Positions 7,515 through 52,760 of a stretch of 64,000 nt of DNA are shown here, one piece after another. Origin of the DNA: Perkinsela sp. CCAP 1560/9 (lineage: Eukaryota > Protista > Euglenozoa: Kinetoplastea); the NCBI GenBank assembly GCA_965644495.1, contig CBFFSA010000006.1, positions 310,001 through 374,000 of the forward strand. Reading direction: 5' to 3'. The position numbers were made by a program, and so were the translations under genes. Every line of letters begins with the position of its first letter. Within the stretch, counting starts at the first letter, position 1. The notes beneath the pieces were generated by a model that searched no databases, was not told the origin of the DNA, and saw only the letters and a list, made by a program, of their open reading frames with translations.

Positions 7515-8430
7515 AACCCTCTTCCTTTCCACCACTCCCCTATTTTCTTGCTCTCTCTACACCCCCACAAAAACAAAACATCACCCTCCCCCTACCCCAT
7601 ATACATGCCCCCTCCCCCCCATGTCTGACACCCCCCACCCCACCCTCCACCTCCTCTCCGGTACCGCCAACCCCGACCACGCGGTCTCCATCGCCCACGC
7701 CCTCTCCCTTCCCCCCCACCCCTGCCGCGTCTCCCGTTTCCCCAACGGTGAAATCGACATTGAGATTCTCACCGACCTCCACGGGGGGGACGCCTTTGTG
7801 GTCCAAAGCACCTGCGGCCCCGACCTCAATGCCGCGCTGATGGAGCTGCTGCTGCTGCACACCGCGAGGCTCTCCGGGGCGCGCCGGGTCACCGCGGTGG
7901 TCCCGTTTCTCGCCTACGCCCGACAGGACCGGCAGACGCGTCCCGGGGTGCCGATCTCCGCGAGTGCGGTCGCGCAGCTGATCCAGGCCATCGGGGTGGA
8001 TCGCCTCGTAACGGTGGATCTGCACTGCGGGCAAATCCAGGGGTTCTTTCGAAACCTCCCGGTGGATAACCTCTGTGTGGATGGACCGTTTGTGCGGTAC
8101 CTCAAAGGGCGGGGGTTCGACCCCGAGACCGCGGTGGTGGTGTCCCCGGATGCGGGAGGGGTGGAACGGGCGACCCGGGTCGCGAACCTGTTGTATGCCC
8201 GTCACGTGGTGACGATTTTAAAAAGGCGCACGGAGGCGAGTAAGGTGCACTCGATGCAGATGGTGGGGGAGGTGAGGGGGTACACGTGTTATGTGATTGA
8301 TGATATGGTGGATACGGGGTGTACGCTGGTGGGGGCGTCGAATTTGTTGCGCGCGAGGGGGGCGTGTGATGTCGTTGCGTGTGTGACGCATGGGATTTTC
8401 TCGGGGGATTGCTGTGAAACGCTGGAAAGG
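7515..8430. other. GC-skew switch island 1 (C-rich to G-rich; centre ~7900)
   Basis: C runs from 7515 (upstream of the PRS ATG) to ~7830; G/T runs ~8100-8430. Flanks return to about average composition. Confidence 0.85.
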
Positions 8431-8616
8431 TGTGAACCCTTGCGTGAGGTCGTTGTAACCGATAGCATACCCCAGCAGGAGCACCAAAAACGGTGTTCGA
8501 AATTAAAAGTTTTACCGTTGGGTCCATTACTCGCTGAAACTGTGCGCAGAATTAATTCAGAACAGTCAGTCGCAGATAGAACGGCGGTATTTAATCAACG
8601 GAATTCGCAATTGTAG
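7621..8616 (+). CDS. PRS: Ribose-phosphate pyrophosphokinase (PRPP synthetase)
   Basis: Motifs SRFPNGEI, FVVQST, PFLAYARQDR, TVDLHCGQIQGFF, VVSPDAGGVERA, IDDMVDTGCTL, THGIFSG. Confidence 0.97.
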   Translation: MSDTPHPTLHLLSGTANPDHAVSIAHALSLPPHPCRVSRFPNGEIDIEILTDLHGGDAFVVQSTCGPDLNAALMELLLLHTARLSGARRVTAVVPFLAYARQDRQTRPGVPISASAVAQLIQAIGVDRLVTVDLHCGQIQGFFRNLPVDNLCVDGPFVRYLKGRGFDPETAVVVSPDAGGVERATRVANLLYARHVVTILKRRTEASKVHSMQMVGEVRGYTCYVIDDMVDTGCTLVGASNLLRARGACDVVACVTHGIFSGDCCETLERCEPLREVVVTDSIPQQEHQKRCSKLKVLPLGPLLAETVRRINSEQSVADRTAVFNQRNSQL

Positions 8617-9180
8617 TTCTACTCTGATTGTATATGTAGGCCTCTTTCTTTCTGGTATCCTTGGGCCATTATCCATGGTTGCATTTCACAGGTTTTGCGA
8701 TGGGTACACACTCTTGTAAAAACAAGTTGGATCATGAAACTTTACTGGGCGTTGACGAAGCAGAATGGGGCATCAGAAAGTAACGTATTAGGTGTTGTAC
8801 CGGGCTAATCTCTAATCAGTGATCGGTTTTCGCAATATTAGGGATATTAACCCACAACGAAAAATGGGAGCCTTTCGCAGTTTTTCAGATTCATGTACTC
8901 ATGTATCTATTTCAGATTCAATACCTAAGAGACGGGCCATATTATGGATGAAACTTAAAATACGGCAATCTCAAAGCATCCCGAAATCAAAGTTTTAGAG
9001 TTTAACGCGCTTCTTGGTCGCACGTCATGTTTATACGAAGAAAATGAAAAATCTAGAATCCCGAACGTCGGAAAAACGCGAATTATAGAGGAATTATAGA
9101 AATATTTAGCATAACACTTCGTCCATTCTTTAATAATTTGGGTGACATTTATGCATGTACAGTATTCATTTTATTAATGT

Positions 9181-9240
9181 TCCTTGTCTCCCCATTTTTT
9201 ACTTTTTTTTTCGCACTACATTTCCCTCAATGAGAGTCAG
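9181..9240 (+). promoter_or_regulatory. Polypyrimidine tract with downstream AG (candidate SL trans-splicing acceptor for ASCC3)
   Basis: tccttgtctccccattttttactttttttttcgc... followed by AG dinucleotides about 90 nt before the ATG. This is the usual kinetoplastid arrangement. Confidence 0.5.
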
Positions 9241-9327
9241 AAATCTATGAGTCAGAATATAATTGAACCACATGCTGTTTATCTACAGAACGCCGAGAAT
9301 TAGGTGTTCCCACGAATCTCATTTTTG

Positions 9328-12300
9328 ATGACCTTGGAAAGGACAGGTTGGGATATTCCAGACACTTTAGATGACTGGCTCCCGAGAATTTTAGAAAATG
9401 GGTGCAGCCAAGAGCAATGTGGAGACATAGTAGGAGATTTCGGCGAAGAAGTGGTCTCTTTATTTCCAAAATTTTTACCGGCGCCAATCAGTATACCTTC
9501 GTGGAATTTGTCAAGTGACAAAGACAAAAACACACGTGAGCACATGTTTTGCGAAACTGCTGAAAGTGTACTGCTTGACTTGTATAAAAACACTGATGAG
9601 GAGCTTTTGCACATCCTTATTAGAATACTTGATAACTACACAAATATTAAGGAGGACACCGAAAAGCGTCATCTCTTGCCAGTCTATATCGCAGAATGCA
9701 CAGAAGCCTTGGGGATTGAGCGGTGCGAACTTGTTGACGCAATTTTCAGATTCCCTGGTGAGATTCTTCTATCTCTTTTGGTAGATTTTATGAAGCTGGA
9801 TGTGTACAGTGATAATACAGAACCAAGCCATTCACGAGGTCCCACAGCACATTTCAAGAGAGGGAAGGAATTGGGCTTTCATACTGAAAGGGCTTTACAT
9901 CGCCGATTAACCTTGAAGGCCAAGGCTTTGCAAGCACTAGAGCAACCCGAAAAATTATTAATTCATGACACCTCTAACTCGGCATCCATAGGTCAAAAGA
10001 AAGTCTTGACAAAAGGAAAAGATCATGTTCGATTTGATTTGCCTGCTCCAACCTCTGCAAATCTTGGAAGAAACCAGTGTTTACCAGTTACTGAATTACC
10101 CGAGTGGACGCGCGATGCCTTCGGGTCTATTACTTATCTGAATACCATTCAAAGTAAAGTATTTTGCACAGCATACGAAACTGACGAGAATATGCTTGTA
10201 TGTGCTCCGACAGGTGCCGGCAAAACACTGATCGCACTTCTTGTTATTCTCCGGCAAATGAAACATAGTCGAAAAATGGATGAAAATTTTCTCAATGATT
10301 TCAAAGTGGTTTATCTAGCTCCCATGAAGGCTCTCGTATCAGAAATGGTTGACAACTTCTCCTCCCGTCTCAAAAGGTATGGGATTGTAGTTAAAGAACT
10401 CACTGGAGATATGCAGCTTACAAAGAAACAAATTGAGGAGACGCAAATAATCGTTTCCACACCCGAGAAGTGGGATGTCATAACAAGGAAAACGTCGGAT
10501 AATCCTTTTTTATCCATTTTGCGCGTTCTAATTTTGGACGAAGTACATCTCCTAAATGATGAGCGTGGTCCCGTACTGGAATCGATTGTTGCGCGCACAT
10601 TACGTCTCGGGGATATTGGGGATGCTGAAGTCCGCATCGCTGCTTTAAGTGCAACATTGCCGAACTACGAAGATGTTGCACGATTCCTGCGCGTTGATTC
10701 CTCGATGCATTTACACGTGTTTGGTCCTGAATACCGTCCTGTACCGTTGAGTACATCGTATATCGGAATTCATTCCTCTCTTCCCGAACAGGAAAAAAGG
10801 CGCGTAATGGAGCGCATCACGTACAGCCATATTTCAGAAGCTCTGTATAAAGGGAAGCAAGTTCTCGTGTTTGTACACGCCAGACGTCACACAGTACTGT
10901 TAGCCAGTCATATTCGCGAAACCTTGCTTGAGAAAAAACAAGAAGGCTTATTTCAAGATGAGACCTTTCTGGATCAAATTGGTAAATGCGTGAAACGACT
11001 ATCTTCTAAAGAGCTACAAGAACTCGCCCTTTATGGCATTGCTTTTCATCATGCTGGAATGCTTCGCACAGATCGCAACGCCGTTGAAGGCTTGTTTCGA
11101 TCAAAGGCACTACGGGTACTGGTCTGTACTGCAACATTGGCTTGGGGTATTAATCTACCTGCGCATACCGTAATTATCCATGGAACTGAAATTTATGATG
11201 CGCAACGAGGGGGATACGTACATCTTTCTGCTCTTGACGTTACTCAAATATTCGGTCGGGCGGGGCGTCCACAATACGATACGACAGGGCATGGTATAAT
11301 CATTACAAGTGAACGGGAAATACATCAATACCTACGGCTGCTGGCGCATTCGCTCCCGATCGAATCAAGACTACATCGATCCCTTCCCGATCATCTCAAT
11401 GCCGAAATTCATGCTGGCACGGTTGGTAACATTCCGGAAGCTGTTCAATGGCTGGAATATACATATTTCTGGCAACGTCTTCAGAAAAATCCTTTAAGGT
11501 ACGGTGTGAACATTTCTGATCTTCGTCGGGACCGCGACTTGACCAAATATAGATATGAATTGATGTCAGGAGCGGCCAAACAACTTGCAAAGTCTCGTAT
11601 GATCCGATACAGTGAAGATACTGGCAAGGTGGACTGTACTGAAGTTGGGCGTATAGCCTCCTATCTCTACTTGAGCTATTCAAGTATAGATATTTTTAAT
11701 AATCTTCTCTCTCAATTTGAACTCGAGAACAAAGCATTTGTGGAAGAGGGAGATGTGTTCAATGTAATTGCTTGTTCAATTGAGTTTTCACAGATACGCG
11801 TACGAATTGAAGAGGAAGTTGATCTACAAAAAATGTACTCGCAGTTGCCAGCGTCTGTCCGACGAATTAGTGTACGACGTGAGAGTGCGGACGATAGCAC
11901 TTCTCAGTGGAAAGTTGTGCTTCTCATGAAATGCTATATATCCAGACTAGTGCCGTCGGAGCACTCAATTGCAAGTGATATGACCTATATCACCCAAAAT
12001 GCAGGACGCGTAGCTCGTGGTCTCTACGAAATAGAGGCTCACAAGGGGCATCCGCATACAGCATTACTTTTTTTCAACATTGTCAAATCATTAGAACGAA
12101 AGTGTTGGGAAGACATTGACCATCCATTGCGGCAGTATGAAAAGGTGCCTCTGACTCAATCAGTAATTCGGTATCTCGACCAGAGGAGACCGAGCATACA
12201 GGATTTAATCGCAATGGGTTCGAACGACATTGGAGATTTGATTCACAATCGTCGGTTAGGAGCGGTGGTAAAGCAAATGGCGTTGCACTTCCCTGCAGTT

Positions 12301-16721: not shown

Positions 16722-16902
16722 TACTATCCCCCGTATTACTATCCTAGCGTTGCCTGGTTTTGAGAAAAAGCAACGCTAGGAGGGGGGGTCCAAAAACAAA
16801 TCGCCGCTTCGCGGCAAGAGAGTCTTGAAGAGACAGTCTAAAAAGCAACGCTAATGAGGGGGGGGGGGTACTGAGGCAACGCTAGGATAGGGGGGGATAG
16901 TA
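16722..16902. mobile_element. MITE-like element, family A copy 1 (~180 bp, TIRs, possible TA target duplication)
   Basis: Left end TACTATCCCCC.GTATTA.CTATCCTAGCGTTGCCT; right end AGGCAACGCTAGGATAGGGGGGGATAGTA. Four TAGCGTTGC/GCAACGCTA motifs. Central GCCGCTTCGCGGC hairpin at 16803-16815. A second copy lies at 56190. Confidence 0.8.
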
Positions 16903-17195
16903 TTTGGTTCGACGAGCGAGTAATGCATTCATTCGAAGCAAAATTTAGTTTTTGCGCACTCATGCTTGCATTTTTGAAGCGACCCCTTCATTTACGCTTC
17001 CAAACAACTCAATTTCTTCTTCAAATTTTCGGAGTTTGGATCTAACTATATTCAATATTTGAAATAACTCCCACTTATATTTTGTTTGGCCGAAACCCAG
17101 GGCACCGCTATACACGCTATAGGCGTTTCTTATTTTTTTCTTCGTTTATTTTTTATTTTGATCATCACAAAAAGTATGGTAAACGATATACTATC

Positions 17196-17891
17196 ATGGC
17201 ATACCTAAACACATGTAGTTCTCACTCTGTGAGGGGTTCCGATGAACCGCAAGCGGTGCGACGTGGACGGGTTGAACGCAATATTCTCCCCCAAGAGTAC
17301 GAACTTGCAAGCTTGATTCGCGATGTGCAGAACCCGGATCCTAGCTGGACGACGCACACCAAGGCGTGTGACTGGCAAGGGATTACGTGTGAGGAAGCTT
17401 CTCCTGCAAATCTTCAAGTCACTGGGGTGAAGTGGCGTGGATACGGTCTGAAAGGGACGATTCATTGGCCTAGCATACCCATCACTACGCGGTCGTTTGA
17501 TCTTAGCTCCAGTTTCGTAACGTTTCAATTTAATCGACTCGAGGGGGAGGTGGACTTGACGGTACTACCGCACGAACTGCAAGTGCTTGAGCTTTATTAC
17601 TGTCAGTTTAGTGGGACAGTAGATCTTACCGCTTTACCCTTAGAGCTTATCGATCTGGATCTGCGCGGAAACAAATTTATCGGGGAAGTTGACTTCACGC
17701 GACTGCCACCTAAATTAAAAATTCTTCGTTTGTGCTACAATAAGTTCAAGGGTGAGGCCGATTTTCGCGATCTCCCGCCGACCGTTGATGTGCTCTCGAT
17801 CTTTCAAACCGAGCTGGAACCACTAAAGGGATTCGTCCCGGACCGTGTTCAAAGGACCATCTCATACCGTAGTACCGTAGCACCGCAGTAA
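17196..17891 (+). CDS. Leucine-rich repeat protein (LxxNxFxGxVDLTxLP-type repeats)
   Basis: ACDWQGITC cap, then repeats such as NRLEGEVDLTVLPHELQVLEL and NKFIGEVDFTRLPPKLKILRL. First ATG is at 17196. Confidence 0.85.
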   Translation: MAYLNTCSSHSVRGSDEPQAVRRGRVERNILPQEYELASLIRDVQNPDPSWTTHTKACDWQGITCEEASPANLQVTGVKWRGYGLKGTIHWPSIPITTRSFDLSSSFVTFQFNRLEGEVDLTVLPHELQVLELYYCQFSGTVDLTALPLELIDLDLRGNKFIGEVDFTRLPPKLKILRLCYNKFKGEADFRDLPPTVDVLSIFQTELEPLKGFVPDRVQRTISYRSTVAPQ

Positions 17892-18132
17892 AGTACATTT
17901 CACTGAGAAATGCTCTAACTCCTATTACATTGTGGCATAATTTTACAGATCATATTTTTAAATCACGCGAAAGTAAGGAAGATTAGCTAGTTTTTTGAAA
18001 TCGTCTCAATCGCTTTTTGTATTATCTCTTTGCATAGAAAGCATTTAATTTTGTCACGTTACGAAAATTTGGCGAAGCCTCCAACTTTTGTGCTTATTTT
18101 ATTGCTTATTATACATTTCGCTTTTTAGAGGA

Positions 18133-19833
18133 ATGGATGGGGCTCCAAATCCTTTTCAGGAAAACCGTCTTCCACCACCCCCAAGTGATACAATAACATT
18201 AGGAGAAGTTGGAGGCGTATTATATCAAACATCAGCTACGGACTCCAGGGATTCACAACTCATCACTTTTAAACAAAATCGAGGACGATACTTTCCCTTG
18301 TTGCACTGCTCTTTCGATCTGTTGAGCACAGTTCACAAACTTTCGAAAACGACTTCCTGCACAGTAAATGACAATAGAAGCTTACCCAACATTTTTGATG
18401 GTACCAGTATTTTTGACTTCAATAAAGCGCTTTGTAGGAATATGCAAGCGATAACGAACAGTGCGCTACTGAAGCTACGCCATGCGGCAGATACTTCCCT
18501 GCTGTTCTCACCCCTTCATTTCTTTCTCAGGCCTGTGCTACCCCCGGACGTCGAGCGTGGCATCTATCAATCTAATAAGACGAAGCAACTTCGATCTGGT
18601 CCGACACGAGTGGTGAAGTCAATTGCGTGGCACTCCTCCGGTATTTTGGCAGTATTGGTAAATTCTTTGCATGATACGGACACAGATAATGGAGCCGTCT
18701 CGAATCGAAGCTCTAGTACACCATGTACCGTGTTACTTGTGTCGCTGGATGACTTATCCGCGGAAGCCAGAGGTATTTCTGCAATCTCGATGGGGGATGA
18801 CAAAATTTCGACGGGCGATCTTTCTTTTCGCGAACTCGCGCATGAATTTCAAACCGGGTGCCACGCTCTGGCTTGGGTTCCGGACAGCACCCCCGTACTT
18901 GCCGTAAGTTGCCGCGGCGGTATACTACTGTGGTCCACAGAGCTCAACTTATCCCACCTCGTCCCCGGGGCTATGCCCGTTCCCCGTACCTCATCCCACG
19001 CTTCACATTTCACCGCGAGTGGGGTTGCCGTATTCTACGCGTTCCCCGACACCCACGCTGAGATTTCAGTTCTGAGCTTTACACCCCAGGGTGGGCGGTA
19101 CCTCGCTGCGGCCAGTGCGTCGAGCTGCACAACCGTTATTTACGACATCTCCCATGCCCCGTGTAGTGCTGGGGCGATGGTGCGTAGTCTCCGTACCTTA
19201 CGTGGGGCCCCGCACAGTTTGTCATGGTCCCCTGAGGGTACGCTATTCGCGATGGGATTTACCCACCGAGCGGAGCTCCTGGTGTATCAAACCAACAAGT
19301 GGTGCTCCACTTCGTACGCTTTTCCCGGGGCAGTGCGTAAACTGCAGTGGGCGGTGTTCGACGATGGTCGGACAACATTACTCGTGTCCTGTACCAGCAG
19401 CAGCGCCTTGTATTTTCTAAGTTTTCCGAAACCAGTGTCCAATGCCGGGGTGATTACTAAGGTGATTTCCTGTGATCCGTACATTGCGCGAGATCGGATC
19501 TCCGGGAAGCCATGTTACGTAGGTGCGGATCTGTCTTCGACAGTTCCCGAAAGATCGCACCAAGCGTGCCTTTTGGCGTGGTCACTGTCGAGGTCGCTGC
19601 AGAGACTGTGTGGGGGGTTGGAGGATGGTCATATTGAGGCATTTCGGCACGATGGAGCACGAGGGTTTTCCCCGATTGGTGTGATTCGGGCTCACCCCGA
19701 TGTACCGGGGGGAGTTCGTATTCAACAAATGGAATTTGTAAGCACAGACTGGGGAGAAGTGCTCTCTGTATTGTGGGATGACAGTTCCATCACATTTACG
19801 TCCTTCATGATGCGTCACGGCAGTGGTTATTAG
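18133..19833 (+). CDS. AAAS: WD40 nucleoporin, ALADIN-like (TbNup48-like)
   Basis: LAHEFQTGCHALAWVPDSTPVLAVSCRGGILLW, LSFTPQGGRYLAAAS, SLSWSPEG and VYQTNKW parallel the ALADIN blades. ATG at 18133. Confidence 0.7.
   Translation: MDGAPNPFQENRLPPPPSDTITLGEVGGVLYQTSATDSRDSQLITFKQNRGRYFPLLHCSFDLLSTVHKLSKTTSCTVNDNRSLPNIFDGTSIFDFNKALCRNMQAITNSALLKLRHAADTSLLFSPLHFFLRPVLPPDVERGIYQSNKTKQLRSGPTRVVKSIAWHSSGILAVLVNSLHDTDTDNGAVSNRSSSTPCTVLLVSLDDLSAEARGISAISMGDDKISTGDLSFRELAHEFQTGCHALAWVPDSTPVLAVSCRGGILLWSTELNLSHLVPGAMPVPRTSSHASHFTASGVAVFYAFPDTHAEISVLSFTPQGGRYLAAASASSCTTVIYDISHAPCSAGAMVRSLRTLRGAPHSLSWSPEGTLFAMGFTHRAELLVYQTNKWCSTSYAFPGAVRKLQWAVFDDGRTTLLVSCTSSSALYFLSFPKPVSNAGVITKVISCDPYIARDRISGKPCYVGADLSSTVPERSHQACLLAWSLSRSLQRLCGGLEDGHIEAFRHDGARGFSPIGVIRAHPDVPGGVRIQQMEFVSTDWGEVLSVLWDDSSITFTSFMMRHGSGY
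18880..19780. other. GC-skew switch island 2 (weaker; centre ~19200)
   Basis: C-biased ~18890-19160 and G-biased ~19330-19780, inside the ALADIN-like CDS. Confidence 0.55.
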
Positions 19834-24542: not shown

Positions 24543-24592
24543 CATTCTCCTACACTGTACTTGACTTGCGATTATCGCGGAAATTTTTGGAA

Positions 24593-24781: not shown

Positions 24782-26506
24782 ATGCGTCGCATTCACTGTC
24801 TAGACGCTAACCATATATTATCGCGGTGTTTTCATACTAGTTCTTGGCTATATCTCAACAGAGTTTATAAAACATTGTCTACCATGACTGAATCAGCACT
24901 TTCTGAGGGAGTCGATCAACTTTTGAAAGTGAAGAAATCTGATACGGATATGTCTACCAATGAAAGCGGTTACTATCAACAAAGGCTGCGCACCGTAGAA
25001 GGTCTTGGCGTAGAAGGCAAGGCCTATCCCCATAAATTCCAAATTTCAATGACGCTAGACAAGTATCGAGAAACCTTTGACGACAAACTAGAAAACGGTG
25101 AACGATTAGAAGAGAAAAGGGTTTCTATCGCGGGGCGAATTATGAATATCCGAAGTAGCAGCTCCAAGCTAAGTTTCCTTGACTTACAAGGAGAAGGGGT
25201 GAAGATTCAAATCTTTGCGCAGGTGAATTCTTATGAAGGAGGAAAAGAGGCGTACAATGCGATTCTTAAAATCGTACACCGAGGTGATATCGTAGGAGTG
25301 CGCGGAATTCCGTGCAAGAGCCGAACGGGGGAGCTCTCCATTGTCCCAACCGAGATGACTTTGCTCTCTACATGTTTTCACATGCTTCCCAAGGATTACT
25401 ATGGCTTCGAGAACCAGGAACAGCGATACCGCCAACGATACCTGGATCTTGTCGTGAACGGAAACACACGTCGTATCTTCCAAACCCGAGCAAAAATTAT
25501 TACCTTTCTCCGTCGTTTCTTCGACGAGAGAGATTTTCTAGAGGTGGAAACACCGATGATGAATCAGATCGCTGGTGGCGCCGCGGCCCGTCCCTTTAAA
25601 ACCCACCACAATGATCTCAACCTCGACATGTACCTCCGCATCGCCCCCGAGCTCTACCTCAAAATGCTCATCGTCGGCGGCCTCGACCGTGTCTACGAAA
25701 TCGGTCGCCAGTTCCGCAACGAAGGCATCGATCTCACCCACAACCCCGAATTCACCAGCATGGAGTTCTACTGGGCCTACGCCGACTACCACGACCTGAT
25801 GCGTCTCACCGAGGACCTCCTCAGCTCCCTCACCCTCTCCCTCCTCGGCTCCACCACCGTCCCCTACGACGCCACCGGCGAGCCCCTCACCTTCAACTTC
25901 GCCCCCCCGTTCCGTCGGGTCCACTTCATCCCGGAACTCGAGCGCTGCACCGGTCGCCCCTTCCCCCCCGATTTCAACGCCCCCTCCTTCCAACCCTTCC
26001 TGTTGGATCTGATCCAAAACGTGGCGAAGATCGAAGTCCCGCTGCCCCATACCGTCCCCCGGCTCCTGGATGCCTTAGCCGGGCACTACATTGAACCCAC
26101 CTGTGTTCACCCCACCTTTGTCTTAGACCATCCACGGATTATGTCCCCGTTAGCCAAATGGCACCGGAGTGATCCACGACTCTCGGAGCGGTTCGAGCTG
26201 TTTGTGAACCGCAAGGAGCTGTGCAACGCGTACACGGAGCTCAACAGCCCGCTCGCGCAGAAGGCGTGCTTCGTGCAGCAAATGGAGGACCGTGCCAAGG
26301 GGGATGAAGAGGGGATGGAGATGGATGCGGGGTACGTGAGCGCGCTGGAGTACGGGCTCCCGCCGACCGGGGGGTGGGGGTTGGGGATCGACCGGTTGAC
26401 CATGTTTTTAAGCAACCAGAGTAATATTAAGGAGGTGTTGCTGTTCCCGGCGATGAGGCCGGAAGGGGGTGGGGAGGAGGGGAAGGGGAGGGAGGGGAAG
26501 AAATGA
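24782..26506 (+). CDS. KARS: Lysyl-tRNA synthetase (class II) with a possible N-terminal mitochondrial presequence
   Basis: [73 protein letters not shown]. In-frame ATGs at 24782 and 24884. Confidence 0.97.
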
Positions 26507-26570
26507 AGGGGGGATTGTGGTGAAAGTTGAGGGGATGTGATGGTTTACGTAGTGGGTTGTACAGGGGATT
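25580..26570. other. GC-skew switch island 3 (centre ~26200)
   Basis: Starts mid-LysRS with almost all codons ending in C. It ends in G-tracts that run past the stop codon to ~26570. Confidence 0.88.
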
Positions 26571-26906
26571 GAAGACGAGTTGAAATACGGATTTGATCTA
26601 CTTGTGTAGGTTTACAGAGTAGCAAAAAATTAATTTATGTTGGGCTTTAGGTTTTTTTCTGAATTTACGTTTCCTTCTAATTTGTGTTAGATATACAACG
26701 TAAGGTTATTTTTAGTAAGACGCAGAAGCTTTACGACTATGATTATCTGGACCTCTTTTTGCACGGAAAACATGGAACTGTTAAGCGGAATGAATATTCT
26801 AATCATTCTTTAAATAGTGTATTTTAATGTAGGTATCGCTGCCGAGGAATGTTGAATTGTTCGGGAAAAAAAAGAATTGCTTAAATTAGAATGAGTGCTT
26901 TTAAAT

Positions 26907-27264
26907 TAGTGTCCGGGTTAATATTCCTATACGCTCGTATTATTCCTACCAGGAATATTAAGTGTTCCAATGGTGCTTAATATTCCTACCCCCCCTCTTC
27001 CGAACACCTACCCTGTCTTTGCTTGAGATCCACAATTTTCATCCTTCAATATATCCCCTTTTTTATGATTTTTTCATCAAATAGCAAGCCCAACGCGCGC
27101 ACAGGCCCTAAAGAGGCAAAAACGAGCACAAGATCAAAGAGCGCGCCGCGAAGCGGCGCGAAATGTTTTTTGGTCCTTTTCTGCTAAGTTTTTAATAGTC
27201 CTATACCTCGTAATATTCCTATACCCTCTTAATATTCCTACCAGGAATATTAACCCGGACAGTG
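26907..27264. mobile_element. MITE-like element, family B (~360 bp)
   Basis: Perfect 19-bp TIR TGTCCGGGTTAATATTCCT at 26910-26928 and 27243-27261. Iterated TAATATTCCTA-type motifs. Internal hairpin CGCGCCGC-GAA-GCGGCGCG at 27142-27160. Confidence 0.8.
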
Positions 27265-27433
27265 GTTTAATATGAGTATTTTTTTAGAAGCAGGTTACTC
27301 CACTGTTCAATTAAAAACAAACATGTGTTCAAGCGATTCGCTGGACGCACGCGGCAATATTATCTTTACTATCAGACATGTTAGACTAACTACTTACTAT
27401 GAGAAAAACTTAACATTTATTTCGGAAACTTTT

Positions 27434-31354: not shown

Positions 31355-31949
31355 GCGTGTTAAAAGTGGTATATTTCACTACTTAGGCTATTAGTTTCGA
31401 TCATATTTGCCACAGGATACTTGCCACAGGTATTATGCTTGGTGTGTTAGGGGCCCTAACTTATGGCCATTATATGTCTCTCTTCAGGTTGCCATAATGA
31501 AATTAAACTCTAGACGAACTCTAGACGATCTTGCCATTAAGTTCTTAGTATTGTACGACAGCGATATGCTATCAGAATTCAAGCGACATAAAGATGTTTA
31601 CTTTTTTTTTATGTGGAACTACGTTTGTTGACATCATCTTGCTCGATTTCAGCAATCCACTCAGGTTAACATTGGACAGACAATTATCCCCCTGAAACCC
31701 CATATAATCTTGCACGAGAGAGAGATAATTTACTGTGTTTCTTGCATCCAACGTGTTTATTCCCTATAAATTTGTTGTAAACGAACTGAATCTTTAAACG
31801 GACATGAATCTACGTACATAACGCACGTGAAACATAAACATTTTTTTTAACACAGCTTTTGGGCACCTTTGAATATCCCAAATATTTTTCTACACATCAT
31901 ACATAAATTCTTATTCTCATTTCATCTGTATCACGCCATATCTTTCTTC

Positions 31950-32960
31950 TGTTTCCTCCTTTCTCTCCCTCCTTATGCAACCTTCCTCCTCCTCCTGCGC
32001 CGGATGCGGCTCCCCCCACCCCACCCTCGCCTGCCCCACCTGCAAGGAACTCCGTCTCCCCCCCACCCTCTTCTGCACCCAAGCCTGTTTCCGCAAAAAC
32101 TGGAAAGCCCACAAATCCACCGCCCACAACCCCGACGCCTGTACCCTACGCACCATGCCCGACACCAGCCTGCTCTCCTTCCCCTTCACCGGTGCCCTTC
32201 GCCCCGGGCGTGTCACCCCGAAGCGCCCCGTCCCTTCCCATATCCGAACCCCCGACTACGCCTCCCACCCCGACGGTCGCAGTCTTCTTGAAGAGAACGA
32301 TCTCCGAGGCGCCATCCCGGTCCACGCGGACCCCAACGTGGTTGCGAAAATACGAACCGTGTGTGCGCTCGCACGGGAGGTGATCAACCTGGCCATGACC
32401 CATGTCGCGCCCGGGGTCACCACGGAGGCCCTGGACCGGGTCGTGCATGCGGCCACGATTGCCCGCGGGATGTACCCCTCCCCCCTGGGGTACTACGGGT
32501 TCCCCAAGTCCGTGTGTACCTCCGTGAATGAGGTGATCTGTCATGGCATCCCCGATGCCTATGTGCTGTGTGAGGGGGATATTGTAAACCTCGATGTGAG
32601 TTGTTACCTCGAGGGGGTCCATGCGGATTTGAATGAGACGGTGTTTGTGGGGAAACCGTCCAAGGCGACAGTGAGGTTGGTACACTGTGCGTATGAGTGT
32701 TTAGCCGAGGCGATCGCGTTGTGTCGTCCAGGGTGTTTTTACCGCAACCTGGGGGAGGTGATCACGCGTCGGGCGGAGAAAGAGGGGTGTAGTGTGGTGC
32801 GTACGTACTGTGGTCATGGTGTAGGGGAGCAGTTTCATTGCGCCCCGAATGTGCCTCACTACGCTAATAACAAGGCGGTAGGGGTGATGACTCCGGGACA
32901 TGTGTTTACGATTGAGCCGATGATTAACCAAGGGGTGTGGAGGGATGTTACATGGCCGGA
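31950..32960. other. GC-skew switch island 4 (centre ~32450)
   Basis: C runs 31950-32340 and G/T runs 32570-32950 across MetAP1. Confidence 0.85.
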
Positions 32961-33111
32961 TAATTGGACGTCAACCACGAAGGACGGGAAGTGGTCGGCT
33001 CAGTTCGAGCATACACTGCTGATAACAGAGAACGGCGTGGAGATTTTAACGGAAACCGAGGAGCCGTATTACCGTAAGCAGCTTCGTGAAATGGGAATCG
33101 ATCTTCCGTAA
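31975..33111 (+). CDS. METAP1: Methionine aminopeptidase 1 with N-terminal zinc finger
   Basis: C..C...CPTC....FCTQACF..W..HK zinc finger. FPKSVCTSVNEVICHGIPD, GDIVNLDV, GHGVG, FTIEPMIN, SAQFEHT. Confidence 0.97.
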   Translation: MQPSSSSCAGCGSPHPTLACPTCKELRLPPTLFCTQACFRKNWKAHKSTAHNPDACTLRTMPDTSLLSFPFTGALRPGRVTPKRPVPSHIRTPDYASHPDGRSLLEENDLRGAIPVHADPNVVAKIRTVCALAREVINLAMTHVAPGVTTEALDRVVHAATIARGMYPSPLGYYGFPKSVCTSVNEVICHGIPDAYVLCEGDIVNLDVSCYLEGVHADLNETVFVGKPSKATVRLVHCAYECLAEAIALCRPGCFYRNLGEVITRRAEKEGCSVVRTYCGHGVGEQFHCAPNVPHYANNKAVGVMTPGHVFTIEPMINQGVWRDVTWPDNWTSTTKDGKWSAQFEHTLLITENGVEILTETEEPYYRKQLREMGIDLP

Positions 33112-33314: not shown

Positions 33315-34748
33315 ATGAGAAAAGTACAATCCTTCGGCCTGTATCAATATTCGCGGAGAAGTATAGCTTACTTTGATTGTCACCCGGGACTCAATACTCC
33401 GTTCTACAGCACACGAGACCGCCCACGTGGAATCGGGAAGCAGCTTGTAGAAACCCAACGTCAATCTTCTCGTCTGGAAAATGGGACACGTGTGGTTACC
33501 GAGGAGAGACAAGGCGCATTCTCTGGCATAGGAGTATACGTACAAGCCGGGGCGCGGTACGATCCTATCCAACTTCCAGGGCTCAACCATGTCATGCGTT
33601 GGAGTTTCCTCACATCAAACTTGGACTCATCCATGTTTCAAATTGACCGCGAATTTCGTGCTGTAGGGGCCAGTTACGAGCATCACGAGCTTTGTAAAGA
33701 GCTATTGGGTTTCAAAATGGAATGCAGACGAGATTTGTACAGCGTGCCTCTGCAAAAGATGTTTTCATGTGTCTCCATACCGCGTTTTATGGAGACAGAA
33801 GTCGTACGCTACCGCGATGCCATGGATGCGATTACAGAAGAACTTCGTTGGAAGACACCACGGCAGTGGTGTATTGAAGAGGTTCTTCAGCTAGCGTTCT
33901 ATCGAGAGCCGTTAGGAATGCCTCGCTATGTTCCCCCTCACATCAACGATGATATTGGAAAGGAAGCCTTACTTCAGCAGTGGCGAAAGTGTTTCCACCC
34001 CAATCGAATTACTCTCACTGGAATCAATGTAAGTCACCAGGAACTAATAGCGACATTCCAAAATCACGAGTTCGCACTTTCCAGCTCCGCCCCACACTTT
34101 CGTGAATTCAAAAATGGATATCAAGTAGGGCCCTCCTGTTTCCAAGGAGGCAAAGATCATGAGTTACATGAGAAACGTCAGAAGGTGATGACAAGTATGC
34201 CTTACATGGAAAATGAAGTTATTGGGGTATTGGCCTGGCGCACTTATGGGATGCAGTCATTGAGGAATTACGCAATCGCATGTGTGACCGTGCAACTTTT
34301 AAGCATTGAGCTGCAGGAAACCATTGAAAACGCCTCCGAGTCTACAGTTGAGGGATTGCGCTCCTTTCATTCTCCTTTCCTTGAAGTCGGAGTTTGGGGT
34401 TTTACCTATCGTTCGCGCTCCGAGGACGCACGGTTAATGGTTGAACAAGGTATCAAATTTATGCGTGGGCTCAAACCGACCGAAGAGGGTCTCGGTACGG
34501 CAAAGCATCGCGCAGTTTGTCGGTTATTTCATGATCATTTTGAGTGTGCCCGTGACTATATGGACTCTCTCGCACTGTCTACATTGACCGACAGTTCTAA
34601 ATTCACTGATGTACTGGAGCAGGTAGATCAAGTGACAGCTGGTGACATTAAAGGCTGCCTAGAGTTTGCCTTAGACGAGAAGCCCTGCATGTACTCCACA
34701 GGCGAAGTCCTCCTTATTCCGAGTCTCCGTCAATTAGGGTTTAAATAG
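33315..34748 (+). CDS. Mitochondrial processing peptidase alpha subunit-like (non-catalytic M16 family)
   Basis: SRLENGTRVVTE..G....GVYVQAGARYD...GLNH; lacks the catalytic HxxEH. Ends with VDQVTAGDI. Presequence-like N-terminus. Confidence 0.8.
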   Translation: MRKVQSFGLYQYSRRSIAYFDCHPGLNTPFYSTRDRPRGIGKQLVETQRQSSRLENGTRVVTEERQGAFSGIGVYVQAGARYDPIQLPGLNHVMRWSFLTSNLDSSMFQIDREFRAVGASYEHHELCKELLGFKMECRRDLYSVPLQKMFSCVSIPRFMETEVVRYRDAMDAITEELRWKTPRQWCIEEVLQLAFYREPLGMPRYVPPHINDDIGKEALLQQWRKCFHPNRITLTGINVSHQELIATFQNHEFALSSSAPHFREFKNGYQVGPSCFQGGKDHELHEKRQKVMTSMPYMENEVIGVLAWRTYGMQSLRNYAIACVTVQLLSIELQETIENASESTVEGLRSFHSPFLEVGVWGFTYRSRSEDARLMVEQGIKFMRGLKPTEEGLGTAKHRAVCRLFHDHFECARDYMDSLALSTLTDSSKFTDVLEQVDQVTAGDIKGCLEFALDEKPCMYSTGEVLLIPSLRQLGFK

Positions 34749-35029
34749 TTAAATAGTTAGGGTTTAAAATAGTTATTTGCGTCCAACAATGGCGTTCTTC
34801 GAAAAAAATGGCATACTGCAATTTTAAGAGTATTTAACGAAACAAATTAACGATACTGGCTCATAGTTTGTTTACCTCAGTGTAGAATTTTATTATGAAA
34901 GCATTGGCTGTTCAATAAAATACATTGAAATCGAACGCGACCCAAGAATTGACTACATGCGTCCCCTTTTTTTAACACACTTTTAACTACACTTTTATCT
35001 TTTTTTTGCTATTATTGATCCTCACTAAC

Positions 35030-35830
35030 CACCACTTTATTTTTCCCTGTCCCCTATCCCACCACATGGTAATTCCACAACACCCTCTGTTTACTTTCTT
35101 TCCACCCTAAAACCCCTTTTCCTACCCTATCCACCTCCCCTCCCCATGCTCCGCCGCCCCTCCCCCCTCCTCCTCCTCCTCCCCTTCACCCCCTCCCCCC
35201 GCTCCCCCACCCTCGTCCTCGACAACGGCATCCGCCACGTCCAAATCACCCGCCTCACCCACCCCTCCCGCCACCAGGCCCTCTCCCTGATCCCCATCCC
35301 GCGGTTCGCCTCCCGGTCCTTCCTCGACGCCTGGTGCTACCAGCCCTACATGCGGGACCACCACATGGTGGTGAGCGACGACATCCACGCCCCGCTGCAA
35401 GTCGCCCCGGTGCGCTGGATCCTCCACCGCTTCCCCGCGCTGGCCTACTTCCACCCGGGGAACCTGCCCGCCGCGCTGGAGCTCGGGATCACCCGGGCGC
35501 AGTTCGTGCAGCGGCAGCGCCTGATGCGACTCCCGTGGCGGTTTCTGGTGTTTCGGAGTGCCCGGGCGCGGGACCGGCTGTGCGGGCCGTACGTACGGCG
35601 GCAGGTGGGGGAGCTCGTGGGGGAGTCCTATGGGGCGCATCCGATAGGGGGGGCAGGAGGAAAGGCGGGGGGAAGACCCACCGTGGAGTCGTTTGTGTTG
35701 TTGCTGAATCCTGCGTGGGTGCCGCATGCGTTGGAGAGGTTGCGTGGATTGGGGTTTGAGATCGAGGAGACACGGTTGGTGGAGGTGGGGAATGATCGTG
35801 ATCTGGCGGCGTTGGAGGCGGTGGGGGATC
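35030..35830. other. GC-skew switch island 5 (centre ~35470)
   Basis: Extreme C runs 35040-35330 and G runs 35540-35830. Confidence 0.88.
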
Positions 35831-35955
35831 TTTTTAATGTCACGTTTTTATATTATTTGCTTTTTCTTGCGGTGCTGAGTAGTGCCGGTGCCGTGCGCTC
35901 ATTCTTTTTAAGAGGTAAGGAGTGGCGTGACAAAGAGAAAGAGTTAACTACGTAA
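35146..35955 (+). CDS. Hypothetical, probably mitochondrial, membrane protein
   Basis: MLRR start and a C-terminal hydrophobic helix (VTFLYYLLFLAVL). The CDS lies inside a GC-skew island. Confidence 0.7.
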   Translation: MLRRPSPLLLLLPFTPSPRSPTLVLDNGIRHVQITRLTHPSRHQALSLIPIPRFASRSFLDAWCYQPYMRDHHMVVSDDIHAPLQVAPVRWILHRFPALAYFHPGNLPAALELGITRAQFVQRQRLMRLPWRFLVFRSARARDRLCGPYVRRQVGELVGESYGAHPIGGAGGKAGGRPTVESFVLLLNPAWVPHALERLRGLGFEIEETRLVEVGNDRDLAALEAVGDLFNVTFLYYLLFLAVLSSAGAVRSFFLRGKEWRDKEKELTT

Positions 35956-36137
35956 CGAGTGTATTTGTACTATGTGGAAATTCACATTATGCCGCACATG
36001 TATTGACTTGTTTTCTAGTATCTGTAATTATGAATTACCCCCGCAATAGGCAAAGCATACGAGTGTTCAATTGTTACTGATATTTGAACGCAGAAGAGTA
36101 GTAGAAATTCGATAGAAATATAGAACCTTTCATAACA

Positions 36138-44571: not shown

Positions 44572-45669
44572 ATGTCAGAAATTGAAACTGGGGATAAACG
44601 CGGCAACAAAAAGCGTGCGAAAGCAGTTGAACGGGGTAGTGATGAAACATCTGTGAATACTTCTCGTTCAATTGCTGACGACAGAAAAGAAAGTCCCACA
44701 GGGAGTTTTGAACCTTGTGAAGTTCAGGTGTCTTTTGATATCCGTGGCTTCACGGAGGACTCCGCTATCGAAGACGTGTCGTTCTATCTTCGAGGAATTC
44801 TTCCTGATCGAAAAAACGTTATATCTTGGGATGTACTTGTGAAAAGTCTTCGAAATGAAGAGCTCACCTCGTTGATTTATCTTTCCGAAACCGTTGACGA
44901 TGCGTCATCTTGTTCAGAAGTATCGCCACAGTGTTCTGCTTCAACAGTCTCAGTGGATTCCTCATCTGAAGCCAGTGGGTTGGTGGCTCTGCTACCAGTG
45001 TGCTTTACGCATAGGAATAAAGAGTGTATATCTACAACTTCATGCTTCGAGGAGCGTGAAATCTCTCGGTATCTTGCAGCATATGGCTGTAACAAAGTGT
45101 GCGAGAAATTGAAAGCGATTTCCACTCAGAGTTCTGAAAACACTTGCTTATATTTCATGTTAAACCATCGAGCGGCTTTCATGCCCAATCAAGTTGCATA
45201 CCAAACTCTTCTTCAACTTTTTGGCACGATAATTAAGAAGTCGTGGATAAAGTATAAAGATATTTATATTTTTACTTTAGTAAAGGCACGTCGTCTTTCT
45301 CAGGGGGGAAAAGATATTATGGCTTCGAAACGCAGAAGGAAGAGTACATCTTGGTCAACGGGCGAGCAGAACTCTCAGGCAACAACTAGCTTGGATTTCG
45401 AGTTCGTGCGACCTGAAGATGAAATCTTTTACAAATATGGTAATTCGCTCACTGAGGTTCGGCCTAATGATAGTTCGGTTGAATTCGCGGAAGAATACCC
45501 TGGACAGCCGACTATTGAAGTTCCTTTTGCAATTCCAGTTTTAATCCCTCTGGTTAGAATTAAAACAAATGGGGCTCGCAAAAGTAAAGATTCCAAATCT
45601 GGGTGTTCCAACCCGCTTTTAAGCCTAATGGGGGAAATACAGAAATTAGTAGATCAAGAGTCCTGTTGA
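44572..45669 (+). CDS. BCP1: BCP1/BCCIP family protein
   Basis: VQVSFDI, YFMLNHRAAFMPNQVAYQTLLQL and FEFVRPEDEIFYK parallel the BCCIP motifs (V..eF, LL.ERfiN.P.q.a....qL, F...EeE.F). Confidence 0.65.
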   Translation: MSEIETGDKRGNKKRAKAVERGSDETSVNTSRSIADDRKESPTGSFEPCEVQVSFDIRGFTEDSAIEDVSFYLRGILPDRKNVISWDVLVKSLRNEELTSLIYLSETVDDASSCSEVSPQCSASTVSVDSSSEASGLVALLPVCFTHRNKECISTTSCFEEREISRYLAAYGCNKVCEKLKAISTQSSENTCLYFMLNHRAAFMPNQVAYQTLLQLFGTIIKKSWIKYKDIYIFTLVKARRLSQGGKDIMASKRRRKSTSWSTGEQNSQATTSLDFEFVRPEDEIFYKYGNSLTEVRPNDSSVEFAEEYPGQPTIEVPFAIPVLIPLVRIKTNGARKSKDSKSGCSNPLLSLMGEIQKLVDQESC

Positions 45670-46249
45670 TACCTATACAATGTGTATCGAGATTCGTCGT
45701 GATGTATTGAATGGATTGCGTACGACACCTGCCGATGATTTTTATACCACAAATCTAGTACGAGTATTTCTAGATAAGGAATTCTAGATAAATGCCCAGA
45801 AAGAGTACAAAACATAAGGAATAGATACATTTCCATTGGAGAATGTCTATTTTATGTTTTTTATTCTAATAGATAATTTATCTGCGTTTTCTATGTACGG
45901 TATTGATGGTTATTAAGTAAAGTACACTCGAAGGACCGTAATAGGAATCTGAAACTGAAATCTTACGTGTAGGTTTTTGAAAGTCTTCACACGCAGCCCC
46001 TCATCATGCAACTTACTTATTTTACCCATTTAAATCCAATAATATGTGTTATGCATGGAAGAATGTTAAACCTGATGAACAGTCTCATGTATGATAAATG
46101 GAACTATTATACACTGTATGCAGCTTATAGTGTTTTGATAATGCCCTCTTTCGCAGCCACTTTTCGCTTCGTGTATTATATACCATATCATATGACAAAT
46201 TGCGTTTCATTATGATGCATCATTTCGTTTAAAGAAGCCCTTATAAACG

Positions 46250-48982: not shown

Positions 48983-49295
48983 TAAATATCCATCCAGATT
49001 GTTTTTCGTGTTACTGTGTATACTGTATCCGCCTAACTATTTCTTTTTCTCTCTTGAAGATTATTCTTTTTGGACCTCAGAATATGTTTTTTCGTAAACT
49101 GGCCCCTTTATTCGAAGGGTCCCAAATGGGTGGACTCTTGAGTAGGGATGACAATAAGAATTTAGTATGATATTTACTACGATGAAATAGTTTGTTGAAC
49201 TTATTTCACCTCTAATTGCACTTCTTCATCTACTTTGCTGCTAGTTTTACCTTACCCGTTGATGTTTCAATGGAGTTCTAACCCCGTATTATACA

Positions 49296-51707
49296 ATGGT
49301 ACGTGTACCCGCGAGGTACCTAAATCTCAACAGGAATCAAGAAGTCCCTGCTATAGAAGAAGGGACAGTATACGTCTCCTGTGATGGATGTGACGCGGCG
49401 TGCAACGGTTATGTACAAGGGTTTTTCTTCCGATGCGCTTCATGTCGGCATGATTTGTGTCAAAACTGTTATGAGCTTTTAATTTTAAAGCCTGCCTATT
49501 TTCCAACGAAAGCATCGGATCAAAGATTACGTGCAAAACTGATAAAGAAACACCCCAATCATCAATTTTTCTTTATGGGGATGGCTCCAGACCCAGCAAA
49601 AATCTGTGTTACGGCCCCAGAAAAGAAAAGAAGAACTCCAGGCAAAGCAAAAGTGTGTATCGCACCCCCAGAAAAGCAACAGCGAACTACCCAGGAAAAT
49701 AAGTTAATTTCCCTTCCGCCACAGACAATTGAGGAGTCATCAGTTACAAAAAATGCGAAACGGAAAAGAAAGAGTGTTCGAAGAAAATCTATTCCATCGT
49801 TGAGCCCGAGAAGCGCTTTCGTTGACACAAAGAACGCGAAACAGATTGATATGGCTGTGCGTTCGAGCAACAGTTCTAATATTAGAAAAGGACTGGTCCC
49901 CTCTCCTTGCCTACACACCCGTCGATCTTCTCCTAGCGAATCATCTCACAGCGATGCTGAGCTGATTTTACCACACGGAATGTCTTCCGGAGCTCCCGAA
50001 GAGGGAGGTTCTCGTAGGGAAAAACTCCCTTTAGTTCAGAAATACAGAGCAGCAAACGTTTTAACCGAGCCAGACTACATAAACGTGAACTGTATTGAAA
50101 CACCAAGTGAAAATGCTAACGAAACCCTGTCGTCCGTTTTGATTCAGGCGGAGAGTAATGATCGAGTGGCAAATTTTGAGCATATGATGATGGCGCACGA
50201 AGTCGATCTAGACTATTCTAATGATATCGATAGTTTTGATGTTGTAGAGGTTGATCATGATCAACCTTTAGCACGTCTGCGCCCGCATCTTGGTACTAAA
50301 ATCAATACTACTCGCTCGCACTGGAAGGCAACGAAAATTTATCCCGTGTATAGAGAAACATCTTTTAAACCTGAGAAGAAAGCATTAGTAAGATTCTTCT
50401 CGTCTCATGTTGTGGAAAACATGGAGTTGTACATTTTGCTTGCCGAATATAGTGCTCATGAAACACCGGTTTCGGAGCTTCTCTTCGTGTGTAATGACAA
50501 CACTGTAGTAAGGGTAACCCTGGGATCTCAGACCATCACAGCAATGGATACTTTAGTACATGACATTGATCGTAACATATTTACTGAAGAAGGTCATAGA
50601 AAAGTGCGTTACAGCGCTGTTCGCATCACCTACTGTAATCGACATGCTGTTTACGTTATTGAATTACCAATTGAGGAACTTCAATTATCTTTCTTGAAAG
50701 TACAAAACAAAGGTCCTCTAAGTCGCACAGAAAGGTCTTCTGTCCCGGGGGTCGAAGCAACACTGTGTGAAGCACATGGAACTGTTGCACACTATTCCGA
50801 CGTTATTTATCGTTGTAGGCTTGAGGCATCGCAGATGGTTTCGTGTCCAATAGCAAGAGGGGCCTTGTTATGGGCGATGCGAGGATCACTTTTAGCTATT
50901 GGCTTCGTATGCGGGGATGTACTCATATTTACGTTGGAGCAACGTACGCTAAGGCCTTGCGGACGGTGCAACCTTAGAATACAAAGTCTTTGTCAGCCTG
51001 TGAGAGTCTGTGATAGTCACGACCTCTCTTATTCGGTTCAACATGCCTGGAAGCACTGTTGTCTCGAAGTTCGCGAGCAGGAATGCTCCGCACCAGCCAC
51101 CGCAACAATGACTACTTCAATTGTAATATTCGGCACTGTAAACTTACTAATAGTTTTGGAGGTTCGTCCTAGTTGTACACCCAAAGCACTTTACAGAGAA
51201 ACGCTTGATTCCACTATTGCATGTGTTGAAGAATATTATACACCGGACAGCACTTCACGGTATAGTGCATCCTTCAACGTTATCTTAGGCGACGGTTCAT
51301 GGATGCTTTTCGATGTCACGATTAATAAGCATCCCCGACCTGTAGTTCATAAGAGGTATGTTTCGGGTTCGTCCGACAAAATACCATGGTGGGTGGATTA
51401 TGATACAGTATTTGTGGGCGATAGTGCCATAGGTATCCCCGAAGTAGGATCATGTGGAGATCGTACAGAAAGTAATATTACAAACGCAAAGCCCGTACAG
51501 TCGCAGAAAGGCATGCTTTTCGTGCGTTCGAGACAGAATAATTCCGCGGCATTCTCATACAACTGGTATCCTTGGGCTAATAGCGACCCCGAAGGTGGAC
51601 GTACTGGTGTCAGCGTTCCATCCATACCTCCTCGATGCATTTCTTCCTCGACTACACTCGTACACTGCCCGGTTGAAGGTGCACTTTACCGTTTTGTACC
51701 CAAGTAG
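49296..51707 (+). CDS. Hypothetical protein with an N-terminal ZZ-type zinc finger and beta-rich C-terminal region
   Basis: SCDGC...FFRCASCRHDLCQNCY...HPNH. Confidence 0.7.
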   Translation: MVRVPARYLNLNRNQEVPAIEEGTVYVSCDGCDAACNGYVQGFFFRCASCRHDLCQNCYELLILKPAYFPTKASDQRLRAKLIKKHPNHQFFFMGMAPDPAKICVTAPEKKRRTPGKAKVCIAPPEKQQRTTQENKLISLPPQTIEESSVTKNAKRKRKSVRRKSIPSLSPRSAFVDTKNAKQIDMAVRSSNSSNIRKGLVPSPCLHTRRSSPSESSHSDAELILPHGMSSGAPEEGGSRREKLPLVQKYRAANVLTEPDYINVNCIETPSENANETLSSVLIQAESNDRVANFEHMMMAHEVDLDYSNDIDSFDVVEVDHDQPLARLRPHLGTKINTTRSHWKATKIYPVYRETSFKPEKKALVRFFSSHVVENMELYILLAEYSAHETPVSELLFVCNDNTVVRVTLGSQTITAMDTLVHDIDRNIFTEEGHRKVRYSAVRITYCNRHAVYVIELPIEELQLSFLKVQNKGPLSRTERSSVPGVEATLCEAHGTVAHYSDVIYRCRLEASQMVSCPIARGALLWAMRGSLLAIGFVCGDVLIFTLEQRTLRPCGRCNLRIQSLCQPVRVCDSHDLSYSVQHAWKHCCLEVREQECSAPATATMTTSIVIFGTVNLLIVLEVRPSCTPKALYRETLDSTIACVEEYYTPDSTSRYSASFNVILGDGSWMLFDVTINKHPRPVVHKRYVSGSSDKIPWWVDYDTVFVGDSAIGIPEVGSCGDRTESNITNAKPVQSQKGMLFVRSRQNNSAAFSYNWYPWANSDPEGGRTGVSVPSIPPRCISSSTTLVHCPVEGALYRFVPK

Positions 51708-52009
51708 CGGTAACGCCTCTCCAATGGGGTTTAATTTTATCATGCACACGTGATAGCAACTAATGGTCAAGATTTCACTCATCTCCTTGACAAGTAGGTG
51801 CGCACATAAAGCGAAATGCATTGACTGCGTGAAGTATATAATGCGATTGTAATATTCCGTTATGATTTGTAGCAACCCTTTAAGACTGCAATTCATGTTT
51901 TAATACATCCCACCTCACTTTTAATAAACTTATTAAATAAGTTTATAAAAATAACGAATCGAAAATACATATTATATTCCATTTGTCAAATTATTATCCC
52001 TTTTCAATC

Positions 52010-52760
52010 CATCCCCCACCTTTCCGCTTCAAGCCTCTTTCTTTTTTCTTTCTTCTTCCCTCCACCACAACACCCCCTTCATCTCCCATGTTACGGCGCA
52101 CGGTGTTTCACGCCTGCTCCTCTCTGTCTCACCCCCCACCCCCTCCGACTCCTGCGGAAGTCCCGGACGACACCCTCACCGCTCCCACCCGCTCTTCTGC
52201 ACGACTCGCCCCGGGCCCCTACCGCCGTGTGGGGAATCTCCTCGTGGTGGAGGTCAAGAAGCAGCTGTGGCAGCAGGGCTGGGAACTCGCCCGGGACCTG
52301 CGCTACCTGGGGTTCGAATACGGCCGCCAGGTCACCGTTCACCCGGACGTGCCGGAGGTGCGGGAGCGGCTGTTCCACGTGCGGCACCTGGTCACGATCG
52401 ACATGATGGACCTGGATGAGGTGAAGGCGGCGCTGCATATCCCTCCCCATATTCACTTTTCGGATCTGCTCGCGCAGTACCCGGATAACTGGGGAGAGGT
52501 GCCGGTGGGGAGGGGGTGCTACGTTGCCGCACGGAAACGGTTTTGTCAGTACCGGAAGGAGCGGCTGCGGGATATTGTTCACCGCGATTCGATAGAGAAA
52601 AGGATGGTAAAATTACAGAAACAACTGGCCAGGGAGGAGAGCGAGAAAGGTCAGGCACAGCATGGGGGTTGAAGAGGTGTTGTATCCCCAAAGGGGGGTT
52701 TCTTTCTCTACGCGATATGCTACGCCGTACTGTGAGAGTGGGGTTTCTGTGTATTATGGG
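52010..52760. other. GC-skew switch island 6 (centre ~52330)
   Basis: C runs 52010-52230 and G/T runs 52490-52760, extending past the uL30m stop codon. Confidence 0.8.
52088..52672 (+). CDS. MRPL30: Mitochondrial ribosomal protein uL30m
   Basis: MLRR presequence. L30 core LRYLGFEYGRQVTVHPDVPEVRERLFHVRHLVTI. First ATG is at 52088. Confidence 0.8.
   Translation: MLRRTVFHACSSLSHPPPPPTPAEVPDDTLTAPTRSSARLAPGPYRRVGNLLVVEVKKQLWQQGWELARDLRYLGFEYGRQVTVHPDVPEVRERLFHVRHLVTIDMMDLDEVKAALHIPPHIHFSDLLAQYPDNWGEVPVGRGCYVAARKRFCQYRKERLRDIVHRDSIEKRMVKLQKQLAREESEKGQAQHGG

Follow-up and report, generated by a model that had tools for sequence, protein, structure and literature searches.

Paired C-rich and G-rich islands within genes of a Perkinsela gene cluster as candidate sites of strand-polar DNA repair

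The window, a stretch of 64,000 nucleotides of Perkinsela sp. CCAP 1560/9 (C6:310001-374000 of an assembly with 21 Mb in 110 contigs), holds about 30 genes, intron-less and on the plus strand throughout, and no tRNA genes were found in it; its earlier description as part of a polycistronic kinetoplastid cluster is supported. The closest matches of its lysyl-tRNA synthetase (LysRS) are prokinetoplastid (69–72%), the LysRS tree places it as sister to the Perkinsela clade (support 97/95), and the NUDIX–LysRS gene order is common to the window, Perkinsela CCAP 1560/4 and an ENA contig. A kinetoplastid-like SSU rRNA lies on C11 (50% GC); a second, unrelated SSU rRNA (C58:32767-34872, 2106 nt, 38% GC) is probably co-assembled host amoeba DNA.

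Along this cluster lie islands in which a C-rich left arm is followed by a G-rich right arm. The islands of the window, their host genes and one internal control are as follows.

7516..8433, no strand: island 1, centre ~7940; C arm from ~100 nt before the ATG
7621..8616, plus: PRPS (ribose-phosphate pyrophosphokinase), host of island 1; silent C/G passes from 81/3 to 8/92
18088..19833, plus: WD40 (Aladin-like) gene, host of the weak 19.3-kb site
18800..19833, no strand: weak or decayed island, centre ~19330; GC-rich, skew within the null
24782..26506, plus: LysRS, host gene; background composition in its first 750 nt
25586..26650, no strand: LysRS island, in the 3' half of the gene, centre ~26160; G arm extends beyond the stop
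31863..32997, no strand: MetAP1 island, centre ~32480
31975..33111, plus: methionine aminopeptidase 1 (MetAP1), host gene; orthologue on the prokinetoplastid contig L028 without island
33315..34748, plus: M16 peptidase, between two islands; background composition, internal control
34952..35976, no strand: strongest island, centre ~35440
35146..35955, plus: 269-aa conserved hypothetical, host of the strongest island; L028 orthologue 51% identical, without island
51872..52870, no strand: 52-kb island, centre ~52250
52088..52672, plus: 194-aa hypothetical, host of the 52-kb island

Six islands had been claimed in the earlier note, of which the five centred at 7.94, 26.16, 32.48, 35.44 and 52.25 kb stand far above chance. 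Their inversion scores are 0.45, 0.53, 0.41, 0.60 and 0.35, where the null maximum is 0.32 with codon order shuffled and 0.365 with proteins kept, and their silent-site log-likelihoods are 95, 112, 104, 108 and 35. The claim does not hold for the 19.3-kb site, a weak or decayed island with 58% GC, an inversion score of 0.175 inside the null and silent sites that give no call.

Over the window and 200 kb of flank (264 kb analysed, 238 kb of it gene cluster), we count 23 islands among ~124 genes, or about one gene in five. They are irregularly spaced at 1–34 kb, in clumps; eight of the 23 fall within the first 30 kb of the cluster, so that their density peaks right after a gene-poor, repeat-rich stretch of 26 kb (C6:210001-236000) that directly precedes it. 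The host genes are functionally unrelated, for which reason we rejected an explanation by gene class.

Polarity, composition and confinement of the islands

The C-then-G order, said to be invariable, is seen in 23/23 islands in 264 kb, and a two-sided G-then-C signal occurs only where two neighbouring islands abut. Genome-wide, a coordinate-only pattern count (a C run followed by a G run 280–300 nt on, against the reverse) gives 85 forward and 17 reversed hits, some of the 85 contributed by ~300-nt elements whose inverted ends start with C runs (C1:2016691, C5:835456, C4:151563, C2:1235321). The order C-then-G reads identically on both strands, so that the minus-strand polarity test cannot discriminate; minus-strand genes of a relative also show the C-to-G pattern. 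As had been noted, there is no exact inverted repeat, and the arms lack complementarity beyond composition. The islands share no motif, a search at their centres returning nothing clearly above the null; a repeat or quasi-palindrome was accordingly rejected, there being neither a sequence common to islands nor complementary arms. The proposed C(+A)/G(+T) skew is contradicted: T/(A+T) at four-fold sites is 0.58 in left arms, 0.44 in right arms and 0.54 in the background (left versus right p=1.5e-4), a silent-site AT skew with pyrimidine on the left and purine on the right, the reverse of a keto skew.

At four-fold sites, where the background is A.27, C.21, G.22 and T.31, C reaches 0.69 in the left arm and G 0.68 in the right. 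Enrichment is maximal 200–400 nt from the centre and has faded by ~800 nt, GC itself is maximal at the centre (GC4 0.82–0.87 versus 0.42 in the background), and beyond 1.2 kb the GC skew is within 0.07 of zero. A one-parameter model, in which any base becomes C in the left arm or G in the right arm at ~1.5x the background flux, predicts the remaining three bases to within ~0.015 (left, A/G/T 0.103/0.083/0.120 predicted and 0.109/0.075/0.122 observed; right, A/C/T 0.108/0.083/0.126 predicted and 0.113/0.094/0.110 observed). Two-fold sites respond on one side only: in left arms C/T sites move to C (.75) and A/G sites have G at 0.25–0.48 against a background of 0.42, while in right arms A/G sites move to G (.82) and C/T sites have C at.28 against.40. 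Ordinary GC-biased conversion is ruled out because these wrong-side sites gain no GC.

The shift is the same in all eight four-fold codon families, which flip mid-gene, and the arms are near mirror-symmetric about the centre, whatever the direction of transcription. The same bias reaches the proteins. Among non-synonymous differences from orthologues, the island gene has its own C in 90 versus 20 cases on the left and its own G in 89 versus 28 on the right, with controls even; the amino acids gained are Leu, Pro and Ser, and Val, Ala, Arg and Glu. This drift force overrides protein constraint, as in runaway conversion (PMC7403616). The earlier view of a fixed, long-used, two-sided and strand-asymmetric process written into coding DNA is thus borne out by silent and replacement sites, unrelated genes and near mirror symmetry. 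CpG o/e is 0.87–0.96 in islands versus 1.03 in the background, no excess, although this means little without CpG depletion. G4 motifs favour the plus strand in right arms (48 versus 5) and the minus strand in left arms (63 versus 2).

The islands had also been described as properties of chromosomal sites and not of genes, which does not hold, since 23/23 centres lie inside ORFs (coding fraction 0.72) and the effect ends at the spacer. At 400–600 nt from the centre, C is 0.23 in the neighbouring gene versus 0.60 in the host, and G is 0.11 versus 0.58 (p ~1e-9 and 1e-8). The reported reach into UTRs and spacers stands as a short extension, ~100 nt upstream of the ATG and ~150 nt downstream of the stop, but the next gene is not reached. 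Of the refuting condition set by the earlier note, islands confined to a gene class and always aligned to start or stop codons, a part is found: centres are always in ORFs and the effect is gene-bounded, but the host genes are not one class. An island may begin mid-gene, as in LysRS, both arms always occurring together, and no centre lies >1 kb from both gene ends (0/23 versus 18% expected, p=0.01). Spacers thus confine the island as a unit with two sides, which differs from a 5'-to-3' codon gradient. A process starting at spacers and moving inward was rejected, as the arms remain paired inside long genes and the gene on the far side of the spacer shows no effect.

Haplotypes and relatives

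Essentially the same islands are present on contigs from other runs (three samples), in a second haplotype and on the ENA contig, which disposes of the assembly artefact that had been named as a possible refutation. We compared two or three haplotypes over 48 kb, the second possibly from a related sample. From −2.2 to 46 kb of the window they form a mosaic of identical blocks (6.3–11.0 and 31.0–41.5 kb) in alternation with blocks diverged by 1%; in sample X2 heterozygosity extends to position 31936, which is the MetAP island's left edge. Block ends lie at ~11.0, 31.0, 31.9 and 41.5 kb, none on an island centre. Indels between haplotypes number 24 events in 5.1 kb of spacer versus 13 in 18.9 kb of coding sequence.

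Against the second haplotype, 14/607 silent sites differ in the LysRS island and the weak one, versus 61/5145 elsewhere (odds 2.0, p=0.03), against a patchy background; the other three islands covered fall in identical blocks, and a read comparison of 5,900 letters gives few differences inside islands. By our calculation silent diversity would be ~1.7-fold under a mutational model and ~0.7-fold under a fixation bias, and the slightly raised diversity leans towards mutation over fixation bias.

A MITE-like element (window 26901-27270) contains internal direct repeats between inverted ends of 28 nt (89% complementary), and the DNA around it differs from the ENA haplotype by 29 SNPs per kb. A second short inverted-repeat family has two copies (window 16739-16890 and 56205-56331). 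The ENA haplotype bears a 435-nt insertion in the Brr2/SNRNP200 helicase ORF (L035 13053-13487; window ~10823), 85% like a repeat at C6:214325-214769.

Contig L028 is syntenic with the window (MetAP, M16, the 269-aa gene and REH2; PSS and Arf), and the three orthologues of island genes examined there have no islands; Arf, 94% conserved, has none either. By contrast, a Perkinsela-clade genome (L002, L036) carries a broader, gene-wide form of the islands: all 11 genes with GC4 >0.7, on either strand, show a C-to-G gradient (PRPS rho.33, p=1e-5; LysRS rho.30, p=1e-6), with the C maximum just before starts and the G maximum just after stops, restarting at each gene. Both two-fold classes are GC-rich throughout in that genome, which is what scattered initiation points with overlapping arms would produce. 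Traces of the pattern are present in Perkinsela CCAP 1560/4. In this sample, only ~20 kb per locus, islands are gained and lost between lineages.

Candidate processes

In their behaviour the islands resemble a stable hotspot where repair is biased. In canids and gerbils, the GC peaks that GC-biased gene conversion leaves at stable recombination hotspots share with them a kb-scale central rise in GC, the overriding of purifying selection, clustering and variation between lineages (PMC7403616); the islands differ in being strand-polar (only C on the left, only G on the right), without GC gain at wrong-side two-fold sites, and gene-bounded. Strand-asymmetric mutagenesis at meiotic breaks, in which translesion polymerases are implicated, is likewise mirror-symmetric with off-centre maxima, but its sign is opposite, C and A being lost on the retained tail, and its compositional effect is orders of magnitude weaker (PMC7615360, PMC11922761). 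The islands are filed under neither class, since they lack the strand symmetry that defines GC-biased conversion and their polarity is not that of known break mutagenesis. Plant coding regions, with C over G near gene starts and bimodal GC3 classes, have a CG3 skew of ~0.05–0.1 and no mirrored G arm (PMC2895627), whereas island skew runs from ~−0.8 to +0.75 and may start mid-gene. We found no description of the island pattern in the open literature, most subscription journals lying outside the search.

GC-skew switches at CpG-island promoters and replication origins, negative to positive on a GC-rich site, recall the islands, which nevertheless lack long-range asymmetry, G+T coupling and CpG excess and are centred mid-ORF (PMC2817419, PMC9645720). 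Fixed bidirectional origins with a local signature of polymerase hand-over, the lead candidate of the earlier note, have in their favour the sign of the switch, as at bacterial and human origins, and the local GC rise with skew at human origins (PMC9645720). We nonetheless consider them improbable. The supporting argument from G+T on the leading strand breaks down on an AT skew of opposite sign, with no keto skew and T as depleted on the G arm as A; no skew remains beyond 1.2 kb, the signal ends at gene ends, and the spacings are irregular and clumped. Origins mapped by SNS-seq in T. brucei share with the islands a two-sided strand-polar composition within a kinetoplastid polycistronic cluster, and G4 motifs, but they are 85–92% intergenic and A/T-rich, with G and A upstream, T and C downstream and plus-strand G4 upstream, the reverse of islands that are intragenic, GC-rich and C upstream, G downstream (PMC13179062). 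A somewhat better, though still unlikely, candidate is a bidirectional internal promoter or self-reinforcing R-loop/G4 bubble, in which the displaced strand on each 3' side would lose C and A and gain G through deamination and bypass by Rev1, and the loop would end where the RNA is cleaved at splice and poly(A) sites. Its polarity matches human CpG islands and origins (PMC2817419), the non-template strand is G-rich downstream in each direction, with G4 motifs placed accordingly, A-to-G and C-to-T changes fit single-strand damage, Rev1 and JBP1 are encoded, and island density is highest at the cluster head. Yet antisense activity equal to sense would be needed from mid-ORF of essential genes, ordinary read-through here leaves no GC skew, deamination does not give the T depletion of the G arm, CpG is not enriched and the G4 motifs may result from the skew.

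Selection on the mRNA (codon use, long-range C–G pairing or stability) would be gene-bounded by nature, as the islands are, and in the relative the gradient restarts per gene and recurs at PRPS and LysRS; folding is also slightly better than in synonymous shuffles (mean z −0.76 versus −0.16 in controls). We judge it very improbable all the same: swapping the arms leaves the energy unchanged, so folding cannot fix polarity, and with no inverted repeat either, inverted-repeat, fold-back and RNA-fold explanations of polarity were rejected. Moreover, eight codon families shift alike and flip mid-gene, amino acids follow the drift, the hosts are unrelated in function, and Arf and the L028 orthologues do without islands. 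Artefact or inserted repeats have next to no chance; homopolymer-rich DNA is error-prone in long reads, but conserved open enzymes run through the islands, independent contigs of three samples and the ENA contig match, and there is a single genome copy with no shared motif.

The footprint thus matches no origin, promoter or recombination signature tested, and sites of lopsided DNA repair are its most likely source. Since the symmetry does not depend on the direction of transcription, a process that acts on DNA to both sides is required, and break repair is favoured by the width, central GC peak and short range of the islands, its two-sided need for homology, the stops at indel-rich spacers, lineage turnover and the recombined mosaic. 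We tentatively read the islands as scars of long-lived intragenic sites of recombinational double-strand-break repair with a strand-polar bias, a reading to which we give somewhat less than an even chance; island centres would then be candidate break sites. Breaks would fall within ~200 nt of a centre, and a tract of 500–800 nt would be processed on each side. The resected and re-made strand (top on the right, bottom on the left) would gain G whatever the prior base, and the retained 3' tail would turn C-rich as it did so; the G-rich strands are exactly those re-made after 5' resection. Tracts would end on meeting the indel-rich spacer, with its change of homology or chromatin. The bias could be mutational, with G put into the new strand or lesions on it, or could arise from mismatch repair in heteroduplex, C on the invading strand escaping correction; C:C mismatches are poorly repaired.

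Several observations count against break repair. At human hotspots the bases struck by mutagenesis of resected DNA are C and A of the retained tail (PMC7615360), so that the polarity is opposite; damage to resected tails was rejected as the source, C being gained left of the centre and not lost. Known GC-biased conversion would raise G at left A/G sites, which is not seen, haplotype block ends lie off island centres, and the missing centres deep in long genes are unaccounted for. Genes for Spo11, five MutS proteins, Rev1, Pol eta, Pol kappa and JBP1 are present in the genome, and meiosis genes have been reported from Perkinsela (PMC5601477); this set, its repair genes ordinary for kinetoplastids, permits any of the models and proves none.

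It is possible, if doubtful, that GC-raising repair in this lineage consists of two strand-specific biases, any base becoming C 5' of an initiation point and G 3' of it, sharp gene-confined sites resolving both halves here and dispersed sites in the Perkinsela-clade relative blurring them so that whole genes are GC-rich and graded from C to G. If so, the islands are a readable map of initiation sites and record undescribed repair chemistry that rewrites essential enzymes. Should they mark break or initiation sites, such sites could be read from sequence alone, without functional genomics, and would offer a direct handle on how GC-biased repair chooses its strand. In this early-branching kinetoplastid a base-independent, strand-polar force rewrites about one fifth of genes, amino acids included, and phylogenies or codon analyses based on Perkinsela-clade proteins are biased by the drift. 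An LRR-like family, large, dispersed and shared with Perkinsela (for example window 17082-17891, and many genes of the flank and of relatives) has no island gene in the analysed 264 kb and one island-type gene in the relative (L036 15930-16601).
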